Sequence record: MG655269.1
Strand: one strand, 5' to 3'
DNA length: 64,000 bases
The translations under genes and the position numbers were made by a program. Below, piece after piece: positions 8,178-46,155 of the stretch. A model generated the notes under the pieces. It ran no database searches. It was given only the letters and a program-made list of their open reading frames with translations, and was not told the DNA's origin. How positions within the stretch are numbered: the stretch's first letter is position 1; each line of letters opens with the position of its first letter.

Positions 8178-8207
8178 AAGGGACTTCGGTCCCTTTATTT
8201 TTTTTTG
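8178..8207 (+). terminator. Intrinsic terminator AAGGGAC-TTCG-GTCCCTT with T-tract
   Basis: UUCG tetraloop and long T run. Confidence 0.9.
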
Positions 8208-9989: not shown

Positions 9990-10024
9990 GAGCTCACCCT
10001 AACCGGTGGGCTCTTTTTTTTTTT
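9990..10024 (+). terminator. Intrinsic terminator GAGCTCACC-loop-GGTGGGCTC with T-tract
   Basis: 9-bp stem followed by a long T run. Confidence 0.88.
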
Positions 10025-10081
10025 GTCTTCTTTTTTTTTGTTCGGGGATTATATGTAGTCCATATTAGCTAAGAGGACATT

Positions 10082-33473: not shown

Positions 33474-33525
33474 CGGCATATAGGCCCTCCGTAATGGAGG
33501 GCCTTTTATGACATCTTTTTTTTTG
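33474..33525. terminator. Bidirectional hairpin AGGCCCTCC-GTAAT-GGAGGGCCT flanked by CGGCATAT and TTTATGAC
   Basis: Perfect 9-bp stem at a convergent junction with motif-like flanks on both sides. Confidence 0.8.
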
Positions 33526-33535
33526 GTTTACAGCG

Positions 33536-33982
33536 TTATACCAGGCGCTGAGTTAACTGCGAACTATATTGAATAGCGTGATAGGTCGCAGGTTTCTCAA
33601 GCTGCTCGGTGCAGCGGTAGACCGGGGTCTTCATAAAAGGGCAACCGGCATTCATTAATGCCTCACGGTTGCTGGGCGACTCATCCACGCGAATCACCAC
33701 ATCCGTGGACTGGAAGCCAAAGACTTCCCGCTTCGTTGCAGTATATTCTGCATCCAGCACCACGATCTTACGGTTGATCACCAGCTTCACGGCCACCGGG
33801 TATTTGATTACCAGGTCTGACCCTAAGCCCGCCAAGACAAACTTAATGACAAACTTCTTAAGTCCATTTAGCAACTGACTCTCACTGGCCCAACTTTTAA
33901 CAATCTGCAGCATGTGTGTATTTCCACTCATATAAGGGGAAGTTAAGAAAAGCAACCTGAGGGCCCGTCCGTGATCCCTCAT
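33536..33982 (-). CDS. Hypothetical protein
   Basis: 148-aa minus-strand ORF; start may be further downstream. Confidence 0.6.
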   Translation of the reverse strand: MRDHGRALRLLFLTSPYMSGNTHMLQIVKSWASESQLLNGLKKFVIKFVLAGLGSDLVIKYPVAVKLVINRKIVVLDAEYTATKREVFGFQSTDVVIRVDESPSNREALMNAGCPFMKTPVYRCTEQLEKPATYHAIQYSSQLTQRLV

Positions 33983-33988
33983 AATGTA

Positions 33989-34543
33989 TTACTTCATACC
34001 GTCCAACTGCTTTTGAAGTTCCTTTAACTGACGGCTTGCATCCGGCGTCTCGGCGTCATGATCTCTGATCGCTTCAATAAACGACTTCCGTTTGCAATAA
34101 GGATACTTCATCCATTTATCAAATGACAAACCAAATTTGCCCAAGATATCCGCACGCAGATATTCGAGCTCATACTTTCGATACCCAACTAACGCCAGCG
34201 AGTCTTCCTGCTCGACCTGTAAGATTAACGAGAGCGGCGAGGTTTCCGCGTTATGGTCAATAATCCCAAACGTGTCATCGTAAAGCTCTGTTAATCGAAT
34301 TAGTGGATACTCCCAGTTCTCGGTAAGAAACGTGGGGTTTTCTAACGCGACATCCCAGGCATCGGACCGATCACTTTCGGACAGACCGAAATCCCAATGG
34401 ATTAGATGTCGGCTTGATCGAACGTCTGATTCAGTGTATTCGTCATTAGGGTAAAAAAAACCCGTGCTACGTTCAGCGGGGTGTATGCCGGGAAGGTGTT
34501 GCTCACCAGCGGTTGACGCGCCTGGCAGTTCGGGCATTTCCAA
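33989..34543 (-). CDS. C-terminal partner ORF of a tail/baseplate assembly chaperone, probably reached by -1 frameshift
   Basis: Overlaps the upstream ORF by about 140 nt, has no SD-supported start, and no ATG after the upstream stop until near its end; FGLSFDKWMKYP resembles gpT/gp51-type C-termini. Confidence 0.6.
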   Translation of the reverse strand: MEMPELPGASTAGEQHLPGIHPAERSTGFFYPNDEYTESDVRSSRHLIHWDFGLSESDRSDAWDVALENPTFLTENWEYPLIRLTELYDDTFGIIDHNAETSPLSLILQVEQEDSLALVGYRKYELEYLRADILGKFGLSFDKWMKYPYCKRKSFIEAIRDHDAETPDASRQLKELQKQLDGMK

Positions 34544-36021
34544 CGCGGTACTGCGACCACACCGACCGTTACCCGGTTGATGAACTTGTTCAGCTCTTCA
34601 AAGAACGGTTTACGCATATCCGGGGTTGCACTGAATTGCTTCAGCAGCAATGCCACGTCATCGGCCGACTCAACATAGTTGCCATCGTTGAACTCGATCT
34701 TAGTCACCCAGTGGGCGTAACCACGCATGGAGGACAGCGCTGCCTGTTTGTTGATGTGCTGCTCACGCTGCTCACGCGTCATGCTGTCGTTGAAGCTGTC
34801 GGTGATCGCTTGTTGAATGCCGTTGATCCAGGCATAGCCCGCTGCATTCTTATCTTCGAGTGATGGCACCCGCAGATAGAACTTCACATCTTTCACAGTG
34901 ATGACATTGTCTTTCATCACTTCAAAGCCGGTCTGATAGGCAATGACCTGCTCGACGGTACGGCCGCTGAAGTGAGACATGTGCGCACGCTGGGTTGGTG
35001 ACAGACGATTGTTGTCAATGATCGACAGACGAGAGACGTTAACTTTCGCTGCTTCAACATGCACACACTTCTTCGGATCGGCGGCACAGGCAGTAACCAT
35101 GTGGTAGCCAGACTTAAAGCGTGCGCCCAGGTAGGCGTTAGCGATCAGATCAAGATCCTGCTCTTTGATTAACGGCAGCAGGGTTTTCTTATCGGAGACA
35201 CCGATGCTGCTGTCAGTGACCATACCCAGCAGGAAGTCAGTCATGTGCTTACGCACCACGACATCCAGGTTGTTAAACACCAGACCGTTGGTACGACGAC
35301 CGAGGATCGCTTTCTCAGCCATGATGGCGGTTTGCATATCCACAAACTCATCATCACCGGCAATCAGCAACGTAACCCAGATACCAGAATGTGGCAGCGG
35401 CAGATGGACATAGTCGCCCATGTTCATCACACCACGAGCACGCATCACTGCCTGTGGACCGGTCAGCAGTTTAGTGCCTTCGGTACTGCGCTTCACTGGC
35501 GGGCGAGAAACACCCTGCACTTTGTTGCTGTCAAGCAGAATACCTTGCAGCCACTGCGCGCCATCCTGACGAATGGTCAGATTCAGACCAGAACGGTACG
35601 ACAGGTTGGTGATGGCATTACTGGCCAGGGATAGCCAGATCATCGCTTTATCAGCACCGTACAGACTGACGATCTCTTTTAAGATCTTCTTGTCTTCGGT
35701 GTTGGTGTCGATCTCATTGATCAACGCCGTCGCTGCATCGTAATCCTGATGCATGATAGACAGCACACCTTCCGTGCCGACATCCTCCATGGAGTTCAGC
35801 TTTTCAATGATCGGGTTCTGATAGAGCGGATCGAACGCCTGCTCAACGGCTTCAACTTCAGGTGCTTCAGCTTCGCCCTGTTGGCTGGTTTCTGCTGGCT
35901 CGGGATCGGTGCCAATAGTACCAGTAGTCGCCGGACGGCCTGGATCAACTTCAGGAATACCAGAGTGGTTTTCTTCAACAGGCTCTTGCTGTGACAGAAT
36001 GGATGGGTTATCACCGGACAT
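34402..36021 (-). CDS. Putative tail/baseplate hub assembly protein (T4 gp26/gp51-like)
   Basis: 539 aa; Y..V.ACAADPKKC and RWKCPNCQ Cys pairs; P.NVARVFF end typical of hub-assembly chaperones (recall). Confidence 0.55.
   Translation of the reverse strand: MSGDNPSILSQQEPVEENHSGIPEVDPGRPATTGTIGTDPEPAETSQQGEAEAPEVEAVEQAFDPLYQNPIIEKLNSMEDVGTEGVLSIMHQDYDAATALINEIDTNTEDKKILKEIVSLYGADKAMIWLSLASNAITNLSYRSGLNLTIRQDGAQWLQGILLDSNKVQGVSRPPVKRSTEGTKLLTGPQAVMRARGVMNMGDYVHLPLPHSGIWVTLLIAGDDEFVDMQTAIMAEKAILGRRTNGLVFNNLDVVVRKHMTDFLLGMVTDSSIGVSDKKTLLPLIKEQDLDLIANAYLGARFKSGYHMVTACAADPKKCVHVEAAKVNVSRLSIIDNNRLSPTQRAHMSHFSGRTVEQVIAYQTGFEVMKDNVITVKDVKFYLRVPSLEDKNAAGYAWINGIQQAITDSFNDSMTREQREQHINKQAALSSMRGYAHWVTKIEFNDGNYVESADDVALLLKQFSATPDMRKPFFEELNKFINRVTVGVVAVPRWKCPNCQARQPLVSNTFPAYTPLNVARVFFTLMTNTLNQTFDQADI
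34451..34463 (-). other. Candidate -1 slippery site GGG-TTTTTTTT-AC
   Basis: Minus strand 0-frame CGG GTT TTT TTT ACC versus -1 frame GGT TTT TTT TAC; T_TTT_TTT heptamer. Confidence 0.6.
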
Positions 36022-45603: not shown

Positions 45604-45650
45604 GCATAAGGAGAGGCCTCGCGCCTCTCCTGTTTATGCCGCCTTTTTTT
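45604..45650. terminator. Bidirectional hairpin AGGAGAGGC-CTCGC-GCCTCTCCT flanked by GCATAA and TTTATGCCG plus T-tract
   Basis: Convergent junction; motif present on both strands. Confidence 0.85.
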
Positions 45651-45651
45651 T

Positions 45652-46155
45652 TTACACTAAAATGCCGTTAAAAGCCACCGGGTCATTACCCAGGAATGGG
45701 TTGTACCGAACCACGGACCCTAATGTGTAATCGTAATAAATGAAATCCAAGCATTGCGCACCCTGGTAGGTAGTCCATGACTTTGATAGATAACCATTGC
45801 GATCTAACGCAACGTAAGCTGGACGACTCGATAACGGGGTAAACTTCATCAACACTTGTGGCTGGTTGTTGAGGTTGTTTGTAAATACAGGCAGGGAAGG
45901 ATGAGCATGCCTTGCAATGGAGCACAACCAAGAGTCGTAGGTAAACCACTCTTTATACGGTGTGCCGTACATGTTGTTGGATGTGTTCAATGTAGTATTA
46001 ACATATTTACCGGCAGTAGCAGACATACTGGTACTTGCGTTCGCTACCTTTGTATATTTAGCGGTATTAGCTGTAAGCCACTCCTGGAATTGCGCATAGG
46101 TCATCTTAGTACCTATCTGTGGCTGTGACTTACTGCCCATTAACATCTCTAACAT
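45652..46155 (-). CDS. Hypothetical protein, paralog of 46168-46677 (possible tail-fibre-associated)
   Basis: MLEMLM start; WL..NT.KY, MYGTPY, IARHA.P, LNRNGY.S and LDFIYYD motifs shared with the neighbour. Confidence 0.78.
   Translation of the reverse strand: MLEMLMGSKSQPQIGTKMTYAQFQEWLTANTAKYTKVANASTSMSATAGKYVNTTLNTSNNMYGTPYKEWFTYDSWLCSIARHAHPSLPVFTNNLNNQPQVLMKFTPLSSRPAYVALDRNGYLSKSWTTYQGAQCLDFIYYDYTLGSVVRYNPFLGNDPVAFNGILV

Follow-up and report, generated by a model that had tools for sequence, protein, structure and literature searches.

A probable programmed -1 ribosomal frameshift in core gene cg18 of nucleus-forming jumbo phages

Introduction

Is the small reading frame that lies downstream of gene MADMEL_270 in Erwinia phage vB_EamM_MadMel (Agricanvirus) a gene in its own right, or is it a C-terminal extension that is translated only by ribosomes that change frame at the end of the gene upstream? 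The question was raised by a sequence-only reading of a 64,000-nucleotide stretch of the MadMel record MG655269.1 (hereafter the window), which proposed that a programmed -1 frameshift gives rise to two forms, of 539 and about 677 aa, of a tail/baseplate assembly protein. The phiKZ-like nucleus-forming phages to which the locus belongs are intensively studied models, and the gene in question, cg18, is one of about 70 core genes that they share.

The analysis described here indicates that the mRNA of cg18, the homolog of phiKZ gp77, probably carries a site of programmed -1 ribosomal frameshifting (probability roughly 0.8); the trans-frame protein itself has yet to be observed. The proposal of two forms is strongly supported by the anatomy of the site, by the family-wide retention (40 lineages) of the heptamer, of its register and of the -1 ORF, by coding selection in a -1 frame that lacks start codons, and by the absence of a fused form of the gene. 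A search of the literature, restricted to open-access publications, found no published description of a cg18 frameshift in phiKZ-like jumbo phages or Chimalliviridae.

Results

Identity of the gene and its surroundings

The features of the locus are listed in Table 1. MADMEL_270 is a homolog of phiKZ gp77, 201phi2-1 gp136, PhiPA3 gp074, Goslar gp081 and RAY gp267. Homology and gene order identify it as cg18, a core gene of the nucleus-forming phages (Chimalliviridae) to which no function has been assigned. Matches to it were obtained with tblastn in 221 phage records, PHIKZ077 among them, and synteny with the homologs of gp78, gp79 and gp80 is kept, which satisfies the test for membership. A published core-gene table equates RAY gp267 with PhiKZ gp077 and Goslar gp081 (PMC10299810, supplement). 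The N-terminal 100 or so residues of the MadMel protein are variable and acidic or proline-rich, and the core that follows is conserved and contains four invariant cysteines (C312, C319, C496 and C499). Neighboring genes encode homologs of gp78, gp79, gp80 (virion RNA polymerase beta') and the gp75 helicase.

Table 1. Features of the cg18 locus, in coordinates of the window
Feature	Position	Strand	Remarks
0-frame ORF MADMEL_270	34402..36021	minus	539 aa + stop
Slippery heptamer T_TTT_TTT	34453..34459	minus	inside the T8 run 34453-34460
Dual-coding overlap	34402..34453	minus	last 16 codons of the 0 frame + stop; first 16-17 codons of the extension
-1 frame extension	33989..34453	minus	154 codons + stop; C-terminal part of annotated MADMEL_269
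Hairpin GAGGG...CCCTC, then T-rich tract	33944..33980	minus	9 nt past the stop of the -1 ORF

The hairpin beyond the -1 ORF is possibly a terminator that ends the transcription unit. Most relatives have a hairpin at the equivalent place, with different stem letters in AH06, and a simple terminator scan did not detect the one in MadMel.

The slippery site and the overlap in MadMel

The run of eight Ts that the sequence-only reading had placed within CGG GTT TTT TTT ACC, 16 codons before the stop of the 539-aa ORF, was confirmed. The 0-frame codons at the site are GTT TTT TTT ACC (34453-34461), which encode V521, F522, F523 and T524, and the heptamer lies across them in the X_XXY_YYZ register. 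TTT TTT (F522 and F523) occupy the P-site and A-site, preceded by GTT and followed by ACC, and MadMel meets the criterion of a canonical in-register heptamer that allows both tRNAs to re-pair. A slip of -1 after F523 enters the ORF 33989-34543 at its 31st codon (Y31), which starts at 34453 and from which 154 codons are read to the stop. The predicted length of the long product given earlier was borne out by the arithmetic (523 + 154 = 677 aa).

The T run by itself is unremarkable, since such runs are enriched across the window (14 overlapping 8-nt matches to T8, from six separate T runs, versus 2.9 expected). Where it goes beyond chance is in register, position and conservation. Among close relatives within Agricanvirus, each of the 16 records aligns in a single piece along the full 2033 nt, and 15 of them span exactly 2033 nt with zero net length change; the remaining record, Simmy50, spans 2042 nt owing to a 9-nt in-frame difference. 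All 16 retain the same overlap of 49 nt between the two frames. In the 0 frame the dual-coding overlap encodes a conserved C-terminal helix tail, and synonymous divergence within it is lowered in both frames.

Conservation across 40 lineages

The locus was compared in 40 independently sequenced lineages, drawn from isolates and metagenomes and extending down to about 20% identity, which included phiKZ, PhiPA3, 201phi2-1, Goslar, PCH45, SPN3US-like phages, Vibrio phages and a Bacillus phage. At the equivalent place, homologous -1 ORFs 149-173 codons long are present in every lineage, and 37 lineages retain the motif NNT TTT TTN. The three exceptions carry degenerate heptamers (GTG TTT TTT in PhiPA3, ATA TTT TTC in PA1C and CTT TTT ACG in Vibrio pVp-JHP1101). 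The codon before TTT TTN encodes eight different amino acids across the lineages, yet its third base is T in 37 of the 40, and 39 use TTT as the P-site codon despite a gene-wide preference for TTC (456 vs 334). Conservation of the slippery run and of the overlap in orthologous loci, which had been put forward as a check on the frameshift proposal, was found.

In the 15 closer lineages (40-80% amino acid identity), the distance from the end of the T7/T8 run to the 0-frame stop is without exception exactly 48 nt, and the -1 frame stays open over 153-163 codons, with its first start codon at +23 to +103. An in-frame stop lies just three codons 5' of the site in 10 of these 15. Invariably, the opening of the -1 frame coincides with the heptamer or precedes it slightly.

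This distribution rules out a homopolymer sequencing error, which the sequence-only reading had listed among its alternatives, and equally the recent breakage of a single gene. Although homopolymers are error-prone in some chemistries, the two-frame layout recurs in 40/40 independently sequenced lineages, a fused ORF is absent from every database searched, and the 16-codon tail of the 0 frame is itself conserved. No fused single-ORF form was found among 1.84 billion representative proteins, where the matches to the extension are all shortened gene calls of 72-186 aa (14/14). The homologs of the upstream ORF are all 539-558 aa (14/14). Two arrangements in orthologs would have refuted the proposal, a single fused ORF or a pair of ORFs with independent starts led by Shine-Dalgarno (SD) sequences and without a slippery site, and neither is seen.

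A change of frame could also take place during transcription, with host or phage RNA polymerase stuttering on the T run so that altered mRNAs yield the same long protein. The run is T7-T8 in MadMel and most relatives, and a U8 tract could support slipping. These phages employ their own multisubunit polymerases, the slippage behavior of which is not known to us; the protein product would be indistinguishable from that of a ribosomal shift; and no conserved RNA structure that would stimulate ribosomal shifting was found. What has been conserved, however, is the codon register (NNT TTT TTN in 37/40 lineages) and not the length of the run. Six lineages have a run of just T5-T6, and in 10 the heptamer ends in C, A or G. 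Slippage by known polymerases requires longer runs. Since the register and not the run length is kept, a ribosomal mechanism fits better than a transcriptional one; the ribosomal nature of the shift is an inference, and transcriptional slippage remains a possible but unlikely route to the long product.

The -1 frame as an extension without a start

Homologs of the extension include phiKZ gp076.4, PhiPA3 gp073, 201phi2-1 gp135 and Goslar gp082. The extension protein is conserved from its first codon (alignment A2), and in tblastn searches with the extension the match of every relative begins at query residue 1. With a profile of alignment A2, 37 of the 40 -1 ORFs were matched at E<=1e-3, and all 40 after one iteration. 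The extension is predicted to be helical, with residues 90-154 modeled confidently.

The claim that the downstream ORF lacks a supported start also held. Upstream of the site, the only start codons in the -1 frame of MadMel are a TTG at -30 codons and an ATG at -28 codons (at 34537), the latter being the annotated start of MADMEL_269, and the SD-like GGA that precedes this ATG is poor. The first 102 codons of the extension contain no ATG, GTG or TTG; the earliest start codon is at +103 and the first ATG at +114. Across the 40 lineages, 39 have no start codon 5' of the site, and the first one downstream ranges from +8 to +103. The start-less stretch is under purifying selection in the -1 frame only. 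Thirteen lineages were compared over codons 18-50 after the site, a segment that lies past the 0-frame stop and, in most of them, ahead of the first start codon; pN/pS there is 0.34 for the -1 frame versus 1.2-1.3 for the other registers.

These observations bear on whether the locus simply encodes two separate proteins, with the downstream ORF translated from an internal or non-canonical start or by termination-reinitiation, and with the T run being no more than a pair of phenylalanine codons. Every database record is annotated in this way, and a start codon is found near the 0-frame stop in 201phi2-1 (TTG at +8), Wellington (TTG at +12) and PhiPA3 (+21), such that coupled re-initiation is conceivable in the first two; in MadMel, the ATG at -28 might serve. 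The position of the start is not conserved, however, and the stretch without starts is maintained as protein from codon 1. The opening of the -1 frame at the heptamer, and the retention of the synonymous Ts of the heptamer against codon preference, also speak against independent translation. As for the ATG at -28, its GGA is too close as well as poor, and the codon is missing in AH06. Two independently initiated proteins are therefore very unlikely, and the extension is better read as the product of a frameshift.

RNA structure downstream of the site

A stimulatory structure 5-9 nt downstream is common at -1 sites but not obligatory, and this criterion was not met. The downstream structure in MadMel has a z-score of -1.2, a stable downstream hairpin (z<-2) is predicted in only six of the 40 lineages, and Rfam gave no family match at the site. 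A single consensus hairpin was obtained, around the 0-frame stop; it begins some 40 nt from the heptamer and shows no covariation, and it was rejected as evidence of structure, as all of its pairs are invariant and lie within dual-coding sequence. The small stems pointed out in the sequence-only reading, 60-90 nt downstream, are indeed present in MadMel, but they are not conserved in relatives (alignment A5) and are too distant for a usual stimulator, and were likewise rejected. Given that no conserved stimulator was seen, the efficiency of frameshifting is probably low and set by the heptamer alone.

Searches for function

The 539-aa MadMel protein has no match in Pfam, NCBIfam or PDB, searches of PHROGs yielded no functional name, and a fold search of PDB returned nothing for the models of either the 539-aa ORF or the extension. 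The phiKZ non-virion RNA polymerase subunit gp68 and the solved phiKZ and Goslar virion proteins were considered as candidates and rejected, as neither piece, nor the profiles, had a sequence match to them in PDB. Goslar gp81 and gp82 are not mentioned in the paper on the Goslar virion structure, and neither product is listed in crude-lysate mass spectrometry of RAY and Deimos-Minion.

The label of tail/baseplate assembly protein fared less well than the frameshift itself. One of 29 relatives (the L016 protein, residues 357-498) scored 23.5 bits against PF12322 (T4_baseplate), for which the cut-off is 24.5, and neither the MadMel protein nor any of the 29 exceeded the gathering threshold. In BFVD, the 539-aa model matched baseplate hub assembly or subunit proteins of about 250 aa (E 1.8e-6 to 4e-3, TM 0.5-0.6 on the target), and the query model, built on 12 sequences, is of low confidence (pLDDT 53). 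Two GenBank records carry names of the baseplate hub type. The label thus rests on one sub-threshold match and on fold matches of a low-confidence model, and is weakly supported.

Discussion

In the proposed mechanism, the majority of ribosomes would stay in the 0 frame and terminate 16 codons beyond the heptamer, which would give the 539-aa protein, the final residues of which complete a predicted C-terminal helix. Some ribosomes, with two Phe-tRNAs on TTT TTT, would slip by -1 on T_TTT_TTT, where both tRNAs can re-pair perfectly, and would read 154 codons in the -1 frame to give a protein of about 677 aa. The long form would have residues 1-523 in common with the short form, and would carry a linker and a helical domain in place of the short tail. 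The downstream ORF would then be the C-terminal extension of the long isoform and not an independent gene. The conservation of the 0-frame C-terminal tail argues that the short form is functional too, and as both C-termini are conserved, it is inferred that both isoforms are needed.

What might the two forms do? Our best guess is that cg18 serves as an assembly factor outside the virion and is a remote relative of the T4-type baseplate-hub assembly proteins, and that the frameshift fixes the ratio of its two forms. Isoforms made in a fixed ratio and apparently absent from virions point to a role in assembly. A more specific and only tentative suggestion is that the cg18 isoforms are the counterpart, in nucleus-forming jumbo phages, of the G/GT-like assembly chaperones that are controlled by frameshifting. 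On this view cg18 would be a baseplate-hub or tail assembly factor. The helical domain of the long form may recruit a second partner, with the frameshift setting the stoichiometry, and the feature may be ancient, older than the split between the lineages that infect Gram-negative bacteria and those that infect Bacillus, and would be a hidden addition to the core proteome of the family.

Should the frameshift prove real, the downstream ORF is wrongly annotated in more than 200 deposited genomes, as a shortened small gene with an arbitrary start, and both a conserved domain and a second cg18 isoform are to be added to the core proteome. It would also be the first recoding event described in the family, as far as the literature was searched.

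Comparison with known systems

The lambda-type G/GT system is a conserved -1 frameshift in the tail assembly genes of tailed dsDNA phages, and the sequence-only reading had likened the MadMel locus to it. The likeness of architecture is upheld. In both, the heptamer that directs the shift is located a few codons short of where the upstream ORF terminates, the downstream ORF lacks its own start and would be produced only as a C-terminal extension, and the two products share an N-terminal body. In both, the arrangement is kept among relatives with strongly diverged sequences, a strong stimulatory structure is not required, and neither product is apparent in virions.

The likeness does not extend to the position of the locus or to family membership. 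The upstream ORF of cg18 (539 aa) is about four times larger than its G counterpart, its heptamer is an all-T motif, and it does not lie between the tail tube and tape measure genes, but adjoins the virion RNA polymerase genes (homologs of gp79 and gp80) and a helicase gene. No sequence match to a chaperone family was obtained for cg18 in Pfam, PHROG functions or NCBIfam, and folds of tail assembly chaperones were matched only at E 0.08-0.9. The cg18 protein also differs from the T4 gp26/gp51 type (PF12322) in being twice as long, and we know of no frameshift described in the T4 baseplate hub assembly genes.

Outside of tail assembly, the T7 capsid proteins 10A/10B, E. coli dnaX (tau/gamma) and orfAB of IS3-family elements are -1 frameshifts that give two isoforms. 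None of them is homologous to the cg18 locus. The shift in dnaX differs in that it shortens the product and uses strong stimulators both upstream and downstream, and that in IS elements in that it fuses two transposase domains. What cg18 would have in common with all three is the use of tandem tRNA slippage on an X_XXY_YYZ heptamer to set the ratio of two proteins.

The recoding site and its conservation

Comparative sequence evidence gives good support to a real −1 recoding site, conserved and most likely ribosomal, in cg18, a core gene of the phiKZ-like nucleus-forming phages. Its predicted products are a 539-aa form and a form of about 677 aa, the latter length being computed by arithmetic only; the sequence-only reading had proposed both forms through a −1 shift, and the comparisons support it. 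In the open-access literature, no account of a frameshift at the locus turned up, and an earlier mention elsewhere is not excluded; the shift thus appears to be previously undescribed, and the site is of clear interest for the jumbo-phage field.

The region matches Erwinia phage vB_EamM_MadMel (MG655269.1), of the genus Agricanvirus, at 100% identity; for the 15 further Agricanvirus records the figure is 96.8-99.4%. On the minus strand, the frame of the 539-aa ORF reads GTT TTT TTT ACC. Codon 31 of the −1 ORF starts with the last T of this run, and 154 codons then lead to the stop; no ATG, GTG or TTG is found in the MadMel −1 frame from the site to codon +103 (counted downstream of the site). 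The T8 run, its register, the −1 ORF and the start-less stretch are all present as the sequence-only reading had described them. The run alone is no proof since T8 is over-represented across the window, with 14 overlapping matches in six separate runs versus 2.9 expected in shuffles (about fivefold).

Features of the cg18 locus and other T runs in the window
Feature	Coordinates	Strand	Remark
MADMEL_270 (539-aa ORF)	34402-36021	minus	annotated hypothetical protein
Residues 1-100 of MADMEL_270	35720-36021	minus	acidic, Pro-rich, predicted disordered
MADMEL_269	annotated ATG 34537 to 33989	minus	overlaps MADMEL_270 end
−1 ORF	33989-34543	minus	
T8 run at the site	34453-34460	minus	16 codons before the stop of the 539-aa ORF
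Hairpin 1, GAGGG...CCCTC + T-rich tail	33944-33980	minus	equivalent place in relatives' loci L002, L007, L023-L030
Hairpin 2, TTCC...GGAA	about 33920-33940	minus	equivalent place in L002, L007, L023-L030
Other runs of T8 and longer	8198-8206, 10014-10039, 33516-33524, 45644-45653	plus	window scan

Among close Agricanvirus records, 15 of 16 align across exactly 2033 nt with no net change in length, and the Simmy50 span of 2042 nt differs by 9 nt, in frame. The T8 run, the 16-codon tail and the open −1 frame of MadMel recur in Erwinia phage AH06 (80% nt identity); its −1 frame lacks a start codon over 85 codons, and the downstream gene is annotated there at only 68 aa. The 49-nt overlap is kept in Salmonella phage SA002, Erwinia phage pEa_SNUABM_37 and Proteus phage 10 (~40% aa identity), where tblastn matches to the extension start at residue 1. 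The preceding codon in SA002 and pEa_SNUABM_37 is GCT, which makes the run T7 and leaves T_TTT_TTT in register. Ten more metagenomic lineages (42-64% identity) behave in the same way. In 15 of 15 lineages, exactly 48 nt separate the end of the run from the 0-frame stop, and 153-163 codons of the −1 frame stay open; in 10 of them, a −1 frame stop lies only three codons upstream of the site. The −1 translations align from codon 1, and invariant residues occur throughout, including the stretch before any start codon.

A tblastn search with the upstream ORF gave matches in 221 phage records, its homologs including phiKZ gp77, 201phi2-1 gp136, PhiPA3 gp074 and Goslar gp081. PhiKZ gp077, Goslar gp081 and RAY gp267 are listed under core gene cg18, a "hypothetical protein" (Prichard et al. 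2023 supplement, PMC10299810). Forty distinct lineages were compared, comprising isolates on Pseudomonas, Erwinia, Salmonella, Serratia, Escherichia, Proteus, Vibrio and Bacillus together with metagenomic contigs. The sequence-only reading had suggested checking orthologous loci for the slippery run and overlap. Of the 40 lineages, 37 carry NNT TTT TTN in the 0-frame register, and a −1 ORF of 149-173 codons follows the site in all 40, with mutual homology throughout. No start codon lies upstream of the site in the −1 frame in 39 of 40, and the first downstream start varies from +8 to +103. In phiKZ, ACT TTT TTT ACT precedes 165 open −1 codons, and the first −1 start, at +85, is that of the annotated PHIKZ076.4. 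The codon before the heptamer phenylalanines in the canonical lineages specifies eight amino acids through nine codons, yet it ends in T, and 39 of 40 lineages use TTT as the P-site codon despite a gene-wide preference for TTC (456 TTC, 334 TTT). Non-canonical heptamers occur in PhiPA3 (GTG TTT TTT), PA1C (ATA TTT TTC) and Vibrio phage pVp-JHP1101 (CTT TTT ACG).

Thirteen lineages were compared for selection over codons 18-50 downstream of the site, a segment that in most of them falls between the 0-frame stop and the first start codon. There the −1 frame gives a pN/pS of 0.34, and the two remaining registers give 1.19 and 1.32. Both frames show reduced synonymous divergence in the 15-codon overlap, the pattern that dual coding predicts. 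Conservation extends to the 0-frame tail, which is predicted to complete a C-terminal helix. In Serratia phages PCH45 and Moabite, the 0-frame runs 37-44 codons past the heptamer, versus 8-21 elsewhere, which implies a longer private tail of the short isoform and a dual-coding overlap of more than 110 nt.

A homopolymer sequencing error within a single gene is ruled out because no fused form occurs in either protein collection. All 14 upstream-ORF homologs among 5.8 billion proteins are 539-558 aa. When the full set of 1.84 billion representatives was scanned with the extension, the 14 proteins found were truncated gene calls of 72-186 aa, with no long fusion among them.

The annotated start of the downstream ORF is different and arbitrary in nearly every genome, with products of 68-184 aa (only 80 aa for phiKZ gp076.4). 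The MadMel start ATG (34535-34537) lies inside the upstream gene and is missing from AH06. The conserved extension has no core-gene entry in the published core-genome table.

Mode of slippage and RNA structure

Transcriptional slippage would yield an identical protein by another route. The codon register is kept rather than the run length, however, with runs as short as T5-T6 among the 40 lineages, and the last base of the heptamer is C, A or G in ten lineages. Because the register is what is conserved, ribosomal slippage is favoured over transcriptional, which remains an inference from sequence and not a demonstration.

The sequence-only reading had pointed to small downstream stems. These are present in MadMel but absent from the 15-lineage consensus fold, which contains only an invariant hairpin at the 0-frame stop, ~40 nt from the heptamer and without covariation. 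The 133 nt from the MadMel site show no greater folding stability than shuffles (z −1.2), and the site region matches no Rfam family. A 50-nt stretch taken from 5 nt past the heptamer has a mean z of −0.34 over the 40 lineages, and a clearly stable hairpin follows the heptamer in only six, Goslar among them (−16.7 kcal/mol), and in none of the MadMel clade. In Goslar and the loci L015, L016, L017 and L019, the hairpin begins ~9-12 nt past the heptamer, with z below −2.4. Gain or loss of a stimulator in the course of the family's evolution is possible. Since none was found in MadMel, its site appears to rely on the heptamer alone, with an efficiency that cannot be estimated here.

Two hairpins lie directly 3' of the −1 ORF stop. 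Most relatives preserve the stems, with different letters in AH06. They look like a terminator or another regulatory element closing the transcription unit.

Possible role of cg18

Neither the 539-aa ORF nor the extension matched Pfam, NCBIfam or a functional PHROG, and no sequence relative of either was found in the PDB, profiles included. For the 539-aa ORF, AlphaFold gave a weak model (pLDDT 53, core 60-88) without a PDB fold match; in BFVD, the hits after the jumbo-phage homologs were to several ~250-aa proteins from T4-like phages that carry the name baseplate hub assembly protein or hub subunit (E 1.8e-6 to 4e-3). One distant relative scored 23.5 bits against PF12322 (T4_baseplate), one bit below threshold. 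The extension model is helical, with the C-terminal 65 residues confident, and gave no fold match. GenBank virion-protein notes mark the neighbours phiKZ gp79/gp80 and 201phi2-1 gp138/gp139 and are absent for gp77/gp136 and the extension in these phages; in the paper on the Goslar virion structure, neither gp81 nor gp82 is mentioned. With the weak hub-assembly matches, these absences make a non-virion assembly factor a reasonable but unproven reading of cg18. C312, C319, C496 and C499 (CX6C ... CX2C) are invariant in 29 relatives at identities down to 21%, suggesting a putative zinc site in the core, just upstream of the frameshift site. Conservation is poor and length variable over the N-terminal ~100 residues.

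The sequence-only reading had likened the locus to the lambda-type G/GT architecture. The cg18 gene is four times larger and lies outside a tail tube/tape measure context, so membership of that family does not hold; the likeness to lambda G/GT is instead one of the way the locus works.
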